A stretch of 64,000 bases of DNA from Podarcis muralis. Lineage: Eukaryota. Shown here piece by piece: positions 43,701 through 59,705 of this stretch; the stretch's first letter is position 1; each line of letters opens with the position of its first letter. The notes beneath the pieces were generated by a model. That model was not told the DNA's origin. It saw nothing but the letters and a program-made list of their open reading frames with translations, and did no database searches. The position numbers were made by a program, and so were the translations under genes. The DNA lies in assembly GCF_964188315.1 (NCBI RefSeq), contig NC_135660.1, positions 39,432,001 through 39,496,000 of the forward strand. The letters are read 5' to 3'.

Positions 43701-45511
43701 TTTTCAACTTTATAGTAGCTAGTGGGTTTAATCTTTGCAGCTCCCCTGTGGAGGTTCATTAGGATGAGAGATAACTGGTTGTGTGGAGACTTGAATTTGG
43801 GTCTTCCCAGTCAAAGTCCGACAATCAGACGTACACTATACGGGTTCTCATTGTTAATGTTAATACCTGTTAATTTTCTATAACATCAGTGTGTTAATAA
43901 TACAGCGGAAGGAAGGAGAAACAGGCTGGAAGGGGGTGTGAATGTGAGCAAATAGTTACATTCAAAAAACTTGGTTACCCTCAATAGATGAGGATTAAAA
44001 GTTGCCAAAGGAAGAAGCAAGGGAGAAGGGATCAAGGAAACTGCAGTATACATGAGTTGAATTTGATATTGTTGGTATTTATCTCATGGTATTTATCCTT
44101 TGAATATAATGATGAAGACAGCAAAAGAAAAAGAAAGTTCTTAGCTTTGTCCTTCAGTTGCAAATTGAACATCACTTGCTTCTAACTTTGCAACTGAAAT
44201 GATTAAAGTATGTAAAATCCATCCATCTTTCGCTTTATTTTCAAGAAGTGCTTCATGGATGACAGAGCCATTTTTAGGGACAACACTGGGAGTCAGTTAC
44301 CATCAAACCAACCCCCTCCCCTGCAAAAGAAAGCTGCATCTGGGCTCAGTATACATGAAGGAGCATCTCCACCCCCATTGTTCTGCCCAGACACTGAGGT
44401 CCTCCTCTGAGGGCCTTCTGGCGGTTCCCTTGCTGCGAGAAGCCAAGTTACAGGAAACCAAAGTTACAGGAAACCAAACAGAGGCCCTTCTCGGTAGTGG
44501 TGCCCGCCCTGTGGAACGCCCTCCCATCAGATGTCAGAGAAAAACAACTATCTGACTTTTAAGAGACATCTGAAGGCAGCCCTGTTTAGGGAAGCTTTTA
44601 ATGTTTAAGACTATTGTATTTAAATATTTTGTTGGAAGCCACCCAGAGTGGCTGGGGAAACCCAGCCAGATGGGCGGGGTATAAATTAATTTTATTATTA
44701 TTATTATTATTATTATTATTATTATTATTATTATTATTATTATTTATTCAGTCTTCACCCTGATTGTAGGCTACATACATCCTGCCGAAGGGATTTCCCT
44801 TTTCCTAGTTGACTAGGTTATTCAGCATTTATATAATGGAGAATTACTAAGGCTGCAATTCAATAAATGGGTAAATCCCATTGAACAAATTGGGTCTTAC
44901 TTCTGAGTAGACATGCATAGGATTGCACTGTAAGATGAGATTTTGAATCCTAGGTGGTGGAAGAATCTGCTGGGACTGAACCCCTTCTGAACAAGGATGA
45001 TCTGGACTCTCTCTTAGGGGAGGTAATGGAAAACAAATCTTCTTGTGCTATAATTTGTCCAGTGCTGAACAGGTCTGTGGATTCTGGAATTGTCCATCGC
45101 AATGCTTGAGATAATTTGGAAGATTTTAGGTCCCCCTTGATATTAATTTGTTCTTAATTTCAATACTTTGCACTTTCAAGTTGCAAGTAGTTGTAACTTG
45201 AGAGCACTTTCATCACATCCAGTAACACAGCAGAAACTCCTCCCGGCTGCTAGAAAGGATGGCAGATCAGTCATGCCTGGTGGACCTGTGCAGTCTGTGT
45301 ACTTCAAAACAGGAGAGCAGCTCTATATTTATCTACTGTCTGCATTTGCTCCGTTGAATTGCTACTCTTATTTCAGTACTGTTGACCTGGTGAACAAATA
45401 GAAATGCCTCTTTTCTCTCTAATCCTACAGAATACCTTTGATGGGATCTTGCACTGGGCATTCCAGAGCGTGCCTCGTCCACTCTCAGACACTCAAGGAT
45501 TTTTCTCATAG
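31738..45511 (+). CDS. AIRE: Autoimmune regulator, 13 coding exons: 31738-31890, 32714-32888, 33385-33540, 34360-34434, 35547-35668, 36902-36979, 40164-40279, 40829-40925, 41501-41656, 42068-42189, 43582-43681, 44954-45022, 45431-45511
   Basis: CARD/HSR ([30 protein letters not shown]...[15 protein letters not shown]), NLS (GKRK), SAND C-part ([11 protein letters not shown]), PHD1 ([29 protein letters not shown]...WRCDSC), PHD2 (CGVC...CNKC...HWPC...CKSC), LDSLL and C-terminal [10 protein letters not shown]. Exon lengths 175, 156, 75, 116 and 122 match the human exon sizes as I recall them. The donor at 35668 is uncertain. Confidence 0.97.
33965..34273. mobile_element. hAT-type MITE with an internal tandem duplication
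   Basis: Same core as 689-938; the tttttacatgagtagaatgt...gggttatttgtgggg block occurs twice. Left end unclear. Confidence 0.7.
34723..35461 (+). mobile_element. Sauria-type SINE containing a second, inverted copy (about 34888-35243)
   Basis: Outer 12-bp TSD ttaagctgatat at 34711-34722 and 35462-35473. gggacgcgggtgg heads on both strands and aggtaaaggtacccc tails. Confidence 0.9.
38396..38904 (-). mobile_element. 5'-truncated L1-clade 3' end
   Basis: 19-bp TSD ccctttgccttgcatttct at 38377-38395 and 38905-38923, with a poly(T) tract on plus. Confidence 0.85.
42301..42652 (-). mobile_element. Sauria-type SINE
   Basis: Full-length copy with the 10-bp TSD aatgtcatag at 42291-42300 and 42653-42662. 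Confidence 0.92.
44340..44745 (+). mobile_element. L2/CR1-group LINE 3' fragment ending in an (ATT)n tail
   Basis: [11 protein letters not shown]-type RT end and a long (TTA)n run at about 44686-44745. A related copy lies at about 58400-58640. Confidence 0.65.
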
Positions 45512-57300: not shown

Positions 57301-59705
57301 CCACCAACGTGAAAATGGTAGAGAGACAAAGAAAAGTAAGAGTAATTCAAGACAAAAATGGTATTACAGTTATAACTCATGTTGCGTCTGCTTCAGGTTA
57401 TGTCTTTTCAAGTTGCGTCCTGCGGGAACCTGGAAGTACAATTACTTCCCGGTTTCACCGCTCACCCATGTGCAGAAGCGCTACGCATTCTGGATGCGAA
57501 TGCTTTGAGTTGCGGATGTGCCTCCAGGACAGATTACATCTGCAACTCGAGATTTGGGAGACTTTGACTGTGATAGAGAAGAAGCAGGAAGGGAAGGTAA
57601 AATGCATAAGAGCTACTATATGTGGTGGCAATGTAAAATTATTAAAAAGGCCTGGGAAAAGACATAATAAAAACTTGAAGAGTATGTGGGAAATGATTAA
57701 TGTTAAAAAAAAAACCTGAAATCACCAGCAGGGGAAAATAAATGCAATTCAAATTGGGGAAAATAAATACAGTGAATTTCTTCTCCTGCATGGGTCCTTC
57801 CAATTCCTGGATCCAGCAATCTAATGGAGGATTCTTTTGTTGAAGTAGCCAGGCAGGGGCCACACTAGCCCCAAAGTACTGCATGGGTTGTTAGTACATT
57901 GGTACCTCTGGTTGTGAACGGGATGAAAGGAACACAACCTGCAGCGACGTGTCTGTGCATGCCCGGGTTGCGATTCACCGCTTCTGCACATGACGTCATT
58001 TTGCAAATGGGTGGTAAGAAGGACAAAAGTCAGCATGGTATGTGAGAGCAGGAATTAGAAGCAGGCTGCAGGCAAAAGCCTGAGAGGGAGAGCCATGCTT
58101 CGTTTCTGCTTGAATCCAAGGCTGTGGCAATGGGAGAAGCAAGACCATCTGGGCATGACTGTAGCCAAGACCATCTGGGCATGACTGTAGACAGCCGCCC
58201 CCCTTAAATCAAGTAAATAAATAAATGAACTGACAGTGTCGCAGATAGCTTGGTTCTGCACCCCTCCCAAAACATAAATCCTGGCTACACCCATATGAGC
58301 TGTTACTACTTTGAGTCCCAAGCCCCAGGAGGTTGTAAATATGACAAATGCTTAAAAGGAGTATGCTTCGTATTTTACTGCTCTTAAGATTGCCACAGCT
58401 TGAAGCGCCAAGGAGAGGGTAGTGGTGCCCAACCTGTGGAATGCCCTCCTACCAGATGTCAAAGAATTAAACAACTACAGTATCTGACTTTTAGAAGACA
58501 TCTGAAGGCAGCCCTGTTTAGGGAAGCTTTTAATATTTGATGAATTGTTGTATTTTAATATTTTGCTGGAAGCTGCCCAGAATGGCTGGGGCAACCCAGC
58601 CACATGGGTGTGGTATAAATAATAATAATATTAATAATGGTTATTATTATTCTTACACATCTTTTCCAAACTTTGGAAGGCAGGAAAAACTTCATAGAAT
58701 CATAGAGTTGGAAGAGACCACAAGGGCCATCGAGTCCAACCCCCTGCCAAGCAGGAAACACCAGCAGAGCACTCCTGACATATGGTTGTCAAGCCTCTGC
58801 TTAAAGACCTCCAAAGAAGGAGACTCCACCACACTCCTTGGCAGCAAATTTCACTGTCAAACAGCTCTTACTGTCAGGAAGTTCACCACTTGTACAGTGG
58901 TACCTCGGGTTAAGAACTTAATTCGTTCTGGAGGTCCGTTCTTAACCCGAGGTACCACTTTAGCTAATGGGGCCTCCCGCTGCCACCGCACAATTTCTGT
59001 TCTCACCCTGAAGCAAAGTTCTTAACCCGAGGTACTATTTCTGGGTTAGTGGAGTCTGTAACCTGAAGCATCTGTAACCCGAGGTACCACTGTACTGTAC
59101 ATATGTACATATGGGGGGGGGGGTTACTGTGTGACACGGATGCAAATCTGATCGTTATTTTCAAAAGAAGCCAACGTCCCCATGTTTTGGAGGAAGCACA
59201 TTAGCAGAGTGTGACCAGCCCTTTGTACTCTTGCTCGCTCACCACTTGTAAGGAGAATCTTCACTTTCTGGGTCTGATAATATTAAGCAAATAACTGTGA
59301 CGTGGCTGTTAATGAAGCACATCCTCTGGAGGCTGGCATTTTGAGAAGGGCTGCTTTACTTCCTTCGCTCCTGCCCACACAGTTCCCCGCTTAAACTCGA
59401 ATTTCCCGCTCAATCCCTCCCGGCTCCCAGGCTTCCCCAGCGGGCGCTCCCGCCTCGCTTAGGACGCGGGTGGTGGGCGCACAAGGGCCAGGGAGCCCCT
59501 TATAAGGGTCTTCCAATCCGGGTTACAAAACGACGGCCCGAGAAAGCCTATGGGACGGGGCGGCGACTCCGCCAACACCGTCTGAGACTGAAGCAGCAAC
59601 TCCTTCCCCTGTATGGGAATGAACCGGGCACTTACTTCCCTCTTTCGCCTTGGCATTGGTCAGAGCAGAGGCGCGAGGCGCCGAGGCACCAGCGCCACCT
59701 TCCAT
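51391..59705 (-). CDS. SP100/SP110/SP140-family SAND-domain nuclear protein, N-terminal and SAND exons: 59705-59636, 55212-55111, 54714-54616, 53975-53868, 52348-52206, 51438-51391
   Basis: GT-AG exons join in frame: MEGGAGASAP..., an acidic Ser-rich exon, a KRKRKRKRKRK NLS exon, SAND (LLVHCGQVKGVLYKEKL-AAGISQKSIKSSDGKWFTPPEFEAEGERESWKSWKRSIRHKGLPLEKLI), then SGYLPNPKRIYGRRKK, the typical post-SAND segment of SP proteins. The exon 1 link across a 4.4-kb intron is inferred. Confidence 0.85.
51725..51933. mobile_element. Tc1/pogo MITE
   Basis: cagtggtacctcgggtt TIRs with TA flanks. Confidence 0.9.
52458..52630 (+). mobile_element. 5'-truncated Sauria-type SINE
   Basis: Matches the 3' half of the other copies, ending in gggtccctttacctt. 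Confidence 0.8.
54286..54454. mobile_element. Tc1/pogo-type MITE, third family
   Basis: TIRs ccgtattttt...aaaaatacgg with TA flanks. Confidence 0.8.
55625..57800 (+). mobile_element. Internally deleted L1-clade element: CpG-rich 5'UTR, ORF1 start, truncated MITE, ORF2 end fragment
   Basis: GC-rich leader at about 55625-55900; coiled-coil ORF1-like start at 57090; MITE at about 57367-57551 missing its right TIR; then YMWWQCKIIKKAWE (ORF2 Cys-rich end) in another frame. Boundaries are approximate. Confidence 0.55.
56479..56775 (+). mobile_element. 5'-truncated Sauria-type SINE inside the L1 leader
   Basis: 14-bp TSD ctaaattagaatca at 56465-56478 and 56776-56789. Confidence 0.88.
58690..58890 (-). 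mobile_element. CR1 3' end
   Basis: catagaatcatagagttggaagagaccacaagggccatcgagtccaacccc, the antisense CR1 tail. Confidence 0.8.
58895..59092. mobile_element. Tc1/pogo MITE
   Basis: cagtggtacctcgggtt TIRs with TA flanks. Confidence 0.9.

Follow-up and report, generated by a model that had tools for sequence, protein, structure and literature searches.

The stretch analysed here, hereafter the window, is a 64,000-nucleotide piece of the genome of the lizard Podarcis muralis (NC_135660.1, positions 39,432,001 to 39,496,000), a lacertid locus without any run of N whose DNA is about 90% identical to that of Lacerta agilis. From left to right the window holds the selenocysteine lyase gene SCLY (- strand), a single-exon gene derived from a hAT element (+), AIRE (+) and a SAND-domain gene (-) that we call the SP-like gene. 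The last two genes run towards each other, and 1,899 bases lie between their stop codons (TAG at 45509-45511 for AIRE, 47413-47411 for the SP-like gene), in agreement with a preliminary description, made from the sequence alone, in which the stops at 45511 and 47411 were said to converge 1.9 kb apart. Self-tolerance in the thymus depends above all on AIRE, a gene present in jawed vertebrates only, whose origin is usually argued from domain design alone. As will be seen below, we consider it probable, at about 0.78, that the window is part of an old paralogue neighbourhood in which AIRE adjoins a gene of the SP100 family and SCLY belongs to the same block.

As for AIRE, most of the features that mark membership in this family are present in the window. 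In Pfam searches with the exons taken separately, the HSR domain is found on two exons (31720-31917, 1.4e-11; 32684-32896, 1.3e-10), PHD1 on exon 40116-40280 (1.4e-9) and PHD2 on exon 42035-42190 (3.5e-5), and the gene closes with a C-terminal LXXLL / F-D-G-I-L tail; a search with stored proteins gave no bromodomain match on the + strand between 25 and 46 kb. The penultimate exon is 96% identical to its counterpart in L. agilis (L001 42152-42000) and 84% to that in Sceloporus, and the terminal exon, read directly from the sequence, consists of 26 codons that spell a 13-residue segment and, further on, F-F-S before the TAG, with a protein identity of 100% to L. agilis AIRE and of 68% to Sceloporus AIRE. 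The second-half SAND exon (35516-35640) can be recognised by eye and groups with its shark AIRE counterpart in the tree described below, yet it stays below the Pfam SAND threshold, whereas the SAND of shark AIRE is strong (4.7e-17) and bears a K-N-W-K motif; nothing in the AIRE region of the window (33600-35700) answers to the first-half SAND piece of shark AIRE. The ostrich AIRE product (447 residues; L003:15793-18611) is likewise without a SAND match. The conserved block that follows the AIRE stop is probably the 3' untranslated region (UTR) of the gene, judging from its alignment with other squamates, and the RNA runs sampled gave no reads over it; in a pattern scan, the first canonical + strand poly(A) signals past the stop are found at 46419 and then at 46936/46957.

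The nine exons of the SP-like gene were marked by tblastn with proteins of Podarcis raffonei (P0002 and P0151, LOC128414428), L. agilis (P0004) and Zootoca (P0277), and the borders were placed by a local script with GT-AG limits and the frame kept open. The resulting coding sequence has 1,371 bases in 456 codons without internal stops, all its introns are GT-AG, and it begins at the ATG at 59705 that the preliminary description had proposed. Aligned with P0151, the model shares 395 identical residues over 506 columns, and the number of repeats in the Pro/Ser/Glu-rich exon varies between species. The SAND domain scores 63 bits against Pfam, the basic run on exon 3 is likely to be a nuclear localisation signal, and the 92-residue tail is predicted by AlphaFold2 as one single helix (residues 2-93, mean pLDDT 92) that probably forms a coiled coil. 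Neither the Pro/Ser repeats nor this helix matched any Pfam family. The CpG island around the start is probably the promoter of the gene, to judge by its composition and position.

The SP-like gene is transcribed and spliced as modelled. Of the four RNA runs used, all from unspecified tissues, two are stranded bulk runs, and these cover exons 7-9 at a depth of 1.3-12.7 with first mates on the + strand alone, which is the usual sign of RNA from the - strand; in addition, 5 spliced reads from 2 runs cross the junction 47709|48027 and so remove the intron 47710-48026, with GT..AG on the - strand. The reads over 47500-48950, although labelled as the same species, carry many fixed differences from the window, being mostly 95-99% alike, and all of them read 48046 A>G and 48067 T>C, which suggests that the RNA donors came from a divergent population or from a mislabelled close relative.

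In the preliminary description the CARD(HSR)-SAND-PHD design was given as common to AIRE and SP100/SP110/SP140; of this design only the SAND was recovered in the SP-like gene, so that this domain is the sole part that AIRE and its neighbour have in common. No HSR (PF03172) was found in the - strand reading frames from 54 to 64 kb, either with Pfam or by tblastn with 275 stored proteins that include many HSR-bearing SP members, and a relaxed search with the Sceloporus HSR gave no remnant in the window even at E 50. Pfam and tblastn likewise gave no PHD or bromodomain on the - strand from 47 to 64 kb, the orthologue models showing a SAND only, and Pfam gave no MYND finger in the gene. The RefSeq models of the Podarcis, Zootoca and Lacerta orthologues are also without HSR. 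Among SP proteins, PHD and bromodomain are present in SP110, SP140 and SP100C and absent in the short SP100 isoforms. The longest isoform of the orthologue, P0151 (Podarcis raffonei XP_053245656), carries the name 'rho GTPase-activating protein 17-like', evidently because the Pro/Ser repeats drive it; we reject this assignment, the protein being a SAND-domain member of the SP family.

By several comparisons the SAND of the SP-like gene is of the SP subtype (SP100/SP140) and not of the GMEB or DEAF1 type. Against solved structures, exon 5 gives E values of 4.7e-10 for SP100-B, 1.9e-8 for SP140 and 9e-4 for a mouse Sp110-like protein, and of 0.41 for GMEB1. This second SAND exon has 176 library matches at E<=0.001, the named ones of which are SP140-like or Sp-100 and come from squamates, mammals, sharks and ray-finned fishes; the SANDs of mammalian Sp-100 and SP140-like proteins are 52-63% identical to that of the window gene. 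AIRE is not among the best 150 matches, the AIRE SAND being too divergent. A tree was built from the equivalents of this exon in 76 sequences, with low resolution since only 46 columns were available; in it insect DEAF1 and mollusc SAND proteins are split from all vertebrate SP and AIRE SANDs (97/84), and the window exon is in a clade of lacertids (100/88) that belongs to the SP SAND1 group. A DEAF1/GMEB-type SAND, which has the fold and a K-D-W-K-type motif in common with the SP type, is thus rejected for this gene by the GMEB1 score, the separate DEAF1 clade and the lack of a MYND finger, and the identification of the partner as an SP100-family gene, made at first sight, holds. Most non-mammalian SP140-like proteins and the echidna one have two or three SAND domains (P0008, P0001, P0018, P0050, P0162-P0165, P0167, P0189 and others), and the downstream copy, of the R-W-C-T-P-E-E-F...S-W-D type, makes a clade of its own (98/77) apart from the canonical K-N-W-K copy.

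Table 1. Features of the window (coordinates are window positions; a dot means no strand)
Feature	Position	Strand	Basis or remark
SCLY (selenocysteine lyase) exons	6316..19011	-	upstream of AIRE; Pfam Aminotran_5
hAT-derived single-exon gene	24073..24993	+	between SCLY and AIRE; synteny anchor
AIRE coding exons, HSR exon to stop	31720..45511	+	per-exon Pfam; ostrich and elephant-shark AIRE matches
AIRE penultimate coding exon (approximate limits)	44954..45022	+	carries a ten-residue motif; open reading frame (ORF)
AIRE terminal coding exon	45431..45511	+	ctacag acceptor before 45431; TAG 45509-45511
Conserved block 3' of AIRE stop	45512..45950	+	aligns with L. agilis and, at ~70%, with Sceloporus for ~440 bases
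SP-like poly(A) signals AATAAA / ATTAAA	46975..46985	-	426-431 bases past SP-like stop; pattern scan
SP-like exon 9: helical tail and stop 47413-47411	47411..47709	-	tblastn 84-91% to P0151/P0002; RNA splice junction
SP-like exon 8: Pro/Ser/Glu-rich tandem repeats	48027..48494	-	ORF; tblastn to P0151; RNA depth <=12.7
SP-like exon 7	48880..48931	-	tblastn 84-94% to P0002/P0004; AG/GT limits; RNA depth
SP-like exon 6	51391..51438	-	tblastn
SP-like exon 5: SAND second half, K-S-W-K motif	52206..52348	-	Pfam SAND 1.8e-17
SP-like exon 4: SAND first half	53868..53975	-	Pfam SAND 2.9e-5; tblastn 89-92% to lacertid models
SP-like exon 3: basic K/R run	54616..54692	-	ORF, tblastn
SP-like exon 2: Ser/acidic stretch	55107..55212	-	tblastn 86-94%
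SP-like exon 1, ATG at 59705	59636..59705	-	matches P0151 residues 1-23; in CpG-rich block
CpG island at SP-like start	59401..60400	.	GC 0.53-0.65, CpG observed/expected 0.86-1.11 (200-base windows)
SINE-like repeat copies	34720-35460, 42280-42650, 50570-50935, 52458-52625, 56478-56777

The convergent pair is also found in two other squamates. In L. agilis (CM020420.1) the SP terminal exon (L001 39471-39764, +) and the AIRE stop (41626, -) leave 1,858 bases between the stops, and in Sceloporus undulatus (CM032821.1) an SP140-like gene (P0016, 401 residues) ends at 38005 (+) and AIRE begins at 39832 (-), which leaves 1,826 bases. The Sceloporus protein has HSR, SAND and the same helical tail, and in an alignment the lacertid, Sceloporus and Anolis tails have K-L-Q...K-Q-M...L-x-T-x-V positions in common, so that the Sceloporus and lacertid genes are taken as orthologous and the HSR exons as lost on the lacertid lineage; as the syntenic orthologue has HSR, the lacertid gene belongs to the SP family by descent and not by architecture. 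The Sceloporus orthologue as a query returned only Anolis and Zootoca relatives, and no tailed gene outside squamates. In L. agilis, moreover, the SP-like orthologue is preceded at a distance of 4 kb by the end of another gene, which encodes SAND and bromodomain, and by collinearity the end of that gene is to be placed at about 64,000, just beyond the window. The tail-to-tail orientation is documented in squamates only.

Beyond squamates, the linkage of the genes can be followed in birds, cartilaginous fishes and amphibians. The ostrich has SCLY (-), the hAT gene (+) and AIRE (+; 447 residues, 2.8 kb long) in the same order as the window, and the SCLY-AIRE linkage noted at the outset thus extends to this bird. 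In the elephant shark (MU249842.1), an SP140-like gene (P0160, L008 10001-19902, +) with HSR, SAND, PHD and bromodomain, whose closest relatives are shark SP140-like proteins, is followed 5.4 kb downstream by a 592-residue gene from L008 25331 (+) with HSR, SAND, two PHD-type matches and no bromodomain. The lizard AIRE exons match the 592-residue gene with 62% (HSR exon 1), 57% (exon 2, including a ten-residue motif) and 92.5% (PHD1) identity, while against the SP140-like gene the values are 41%, 39% and 55%; by these better exon matches and by its Pfam domains the 592-residue gene is identified as the true shark AIRE. The proteins named 'autoimmune regulator' at NCBI for the elephant shark (XP_007904586 / XP_007904635) were rejected as AIRE, since they belong to the SP140-like gene with the bromodomain, and a search seeded with the Callorhinchus 'autoimmune regulator' (P0115, SP140-like) returned SP genes only. 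For Xenopus tropicalis, a 2026 preprint (10.64898/2026.03.27.714371) places sp110 directly next to aire, with ankmy1 at a distance of 21 genes.

The linkage is common to cartilaginous fish, amphibians and squamates and so is most likely as old as the jawed-vertebrate ancestor. The same findings speak against a supposed limitation of the adjacency to one lineage or assembly, as the pair is linked in two more squamates, in the elephant shark and, according to the preprint, in Xenopus. What they leave of the ancestral arrangement first proposed is the linkage and not the tail-to-tail layout, because the SP gene of the shark precedes AIRE in the same orientation; the two groups have different orientations and spacings, and the linkage alone is common.

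The human map, by comparison, has SCLY, ANKMY1 and the SP cluster at 2q37 and AIRE at 21q22.3. The lacertid gene resembles the human SP100/SP110/SP140/SP140L cluster (2q37.1) in its SAND subtype and probably in gene clustering, to judge from the SAND and bromodomain gene near the L. agilis orthologue, and the Sceloporus orthologue keeps HSR/CARD as a further likeness. It differs in having no HSR/CARD, PHD or bromodomain, in ending with Pro/Ser repeats and the 92-residue helix, and in lying beside AIRE and near SCLY, while human AIRE is on another chromosome. The likeness to the aire-sp110 pair of Xenopus consists in the SP-family immediate neighbour and in ankmy1, a human 2q37.3 gene, on the same stretch; in that preprint (Novabrowse, 10.64898/2026.03.27.714371) the pair is mentioned in passing as a cause of orthologue/paralogue confusion, with no conclusion on origin, orientation or spacing. 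The common domain design of AIRE and the SP family has been described in reviews (PMC4548144, PMC12748037), and a Tibetan-chicken paper lists AIRE and SCLY without gene order. In the literature searched, we found no statement that the genomic linkage of AIRE and SP genes is ancestral.

Of the competing explanations, an assembly error in this genome has a negligible probability, since collinearity with the independent chromosome-level assembly of L. agilis extends over 44.9-64.0 kb of the window, the same convergent pair occurs in Sceloporus, and no N runs interrupt the window. A more serious one takes the squamate adjacency as a secondary, lineage-specific rearrangement that is uninformative on the origin of AIRE. 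It could appeal to the convergent layout, known from squamates alone, to the ostrich, where the 2.2 kb covered downstream of AIRE show neither a called gene nor anything like SP, and to the shark, where the two genes are on the same strand 5.4 kb apart, against 1.8-1.9 kb and convergent in squamates. Two more observations weigh against an old neighbourhood in general: in an old alligator assembly SCLY and the hAT gene are present, but AIRE was not seen in the 10 kb around the hAT gene, and within 10 kb of zebrafish sp100.3 there are other SP-like neighbours only and not aire. (A 512-residue gene upstream of zebrafish sp100.3 was considered as aire and rejected for its SP-type SAND.) The echidna locus (CM027606.1; L007:1-38538) has a place on both sides of the balance: a Sp-100-like gene (P0095, HSR and SAND, 321 residues) is enclosed there by the limits of an Aminotran_5 gene of 447 residues that runs on the opposite strand, which speaks for the neighbourhood, and the Aminotran_5 gene would by its size fit SCLY as a candidate although none of its exons is in the locus; no AIRE, hAT or SCLY exons were found in these 38.5 kb, both ends of which the Aminotran_5 gene overruns; either the Sp-100-like gene is nested in a very long SCLY intron or the gene model is over-extended. 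In the SAND tree, too, the lizard and shark AIRE pair (88/86) falls inside the same unresolved SP SAND1 group as the window exon, on 46 columns. Nevertheless, an SP140-like gene adjoins the true AIRE in the elephant shark and sp110 adjoins aire in Xenopus, and that two such small families should have come together by chance three separate times is hardly to be expected; moreover shark and lizards agree in the side of AIRE on which the SP gene lies, so that one inversion of AIRE explains the difference in layout. We therefore hold a secondary rearrangement to be quite improbable and prefer the old neighbourhood.

A further point to be weighed against this preference lies in the lacertid gene itself, which between the window and L. 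agilis has dN 0.070 and dS 0.089 (ratio 0.78 over 180 codons) with dN > dS in the SAND exon, so that the constraint on it is weak or selection is diversifying it. Taken together with HSR, PHD and bromodomain all not found and with the varying number of repeats among species, this might describe a decaying SP remnant that has lost its HSR and drifts nearly neutrally without working. Such decay is unlikely, in view of the open frame of 456 codons with all introns GT-AG, the frame and architecture preserved in four lacertids (Podarcis, Zootoca, Lacerta and the window species), the correctly spliced transcripts and a SAND still at 63 bits; the gene is intact, spliced, expressed and fast-evolving, and SP-family genes usually evolve fast. 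There is also the suggestion, already in the preliminary description, of shared regulation or read-through interference, that is, of 3' ends functionally coupled by read-through, overlapping 3' UTRs or a shared element, by which the spacing of 1.83-1.90 kb would have been kept. The similar stop-to-stop spacings in the three squamates (1,899, 1,858 and 1,826 bases) would fit, the AIRE AATAAA signals at 46936/46957 stand beside the SP-like poly(A) signals so that the ends could abut, and one run (X22) has low - strand-sense depth (0.25-4.2), patchy below the SP-like poly(A), with some antisense within the last AIRE intron (45001-45334). But the AIRE terminal exon (bins 45335-45668) has depth 0 in all four RNA runs, including the two bulk runs that cover the SP-like exons, so no co-expression is seen there; the - strand-sense depth below the SP-like stop fades at about 47172 in X21 and about 46840 in X22, with patchy traces further down, and in the four runs no continuous antisense read-through from the SP-like gene reaches AIRE; the intergenic DNA is about 92% identical between L. 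agilis and the window, no more conserved than the flanks; and the alignment with Sceloporus is lost beyond about 440 bases past the AIRE stop. The two transcripts could come close, with overlap or coupling having no support in the reads from the SP-like side, the tissues sampled evidently not expressing AIRE, and we regard functional coupling as highly improbable.

Returning to the old neighbourhood, the most plausible history that we can draw from sequence and gene order is the following. AIRE would have arisen by tandem duplication of an SP-like gene before the split of cartilaginous and bony vertebrates; this fits the tandem layout of the shark and the place of the AIRE SAND within the SP group, although so short a tree is no proof, and the birth by local duplication first suggested is consistent with the data and unproven. 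One local inversion of the AIRE side may then have turned the shark-type tandem into the squamate tail-to-tail pair, a single inversion being sufficient since the SP gene is on the same side and the direction of AIRE alone differs. On the mammalian line AIRE would have left the SCLY/SP block, and here the later separation proposed in the beginning agrees with the human map and with the one echidna locus, where the SP100-like gene is in the range of a SCLY-sized gene without AIRE. The gene adjoining AIRE is a squamate SP member with HSR, SAND and helical tail, and in lacertids the HSR/CARD exons have been lost and the start is now at the CpG-island exon, leaving a basic run, one SAND, the Pro/Ser repeats and the long helix. 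The two lizard genes would be under separate control, with transcripts that end at poly(A) sites of their own. In its boldest form, to which we give somewhat less than even odds, AIRE was a tandem copy of an SP140-like gene at a SCLY-linked, human-2q37-like locus of the jawed-vertebrate ancestor, kept this neighbour through over 400 million years in the shark, amphibian and squamate lines, left it on no line but the mammalian one, for a position next to DNMT3L (human 21q22.3), and was inverted once in squamates, where the spacing of 1.83-1.90 kb would have been held since the lacertid/iguanian split, maybe via a shared termination or boundary element.

The SCLY exon with the PLP site (13920-14192) matches rat/human selenocysteine lyase at 4e-23/8e-22, versus about 1e-5 to 5e-5 for cysteine desulfurase (NFS1), and 12 SCLY exon regions (14 overlapping reading-frame pieces) match ostrich SCLY. 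Orthologues of the hAT-derived gene, with 59-92% identity, are found in squamates, turtles, birds and alligator. One SINE-like repeat is present in at least 5 copies, 70-90% alike, in the introns of AIRE and the SP-like gene, and also in L. agilis; its copies produce spuriously high RNA depth at 44500-44830 and 46504-46670. The SP-like gene contains in its intron 1, antisense to itself, an open frame of 228 codons (57033-57716, +) with a heptad-like N-terminal part; this frame looks like a LINE ORF1-type remnant, its sole Pfam match being weak and by chance. In L. agilis (L001:20036-32700, 33182-39012) the SAND exons, the next two small exons and part of the repeat exon are present twice, about 13 kb apart and nearly identical, which from the sequence is apparently a recent internal duplication or two tandem copies; the window is without it.

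To sum up, gene order offers an independent line of evidence on the origin of AIRE and makes the tandem-duplication origin testable with public assemblies. The true AIRE adjoins an SP-family gene in shark, frog and lizards, the counterpart block in human holds the SP cluster and SCLY and not AIRE, and gene order would thus put the departure of AIRE on the mammalian line. That AIRE and SP genes lie so close and are so similar also explains annotation mix-ups such as the elephant-shark 'autoimmune regulator' and the salamander Aire confused with an SP gene. Finally, the lacertid gene is a natural SP protein without HSR, in which the predicted long helix may have taken over self-association.

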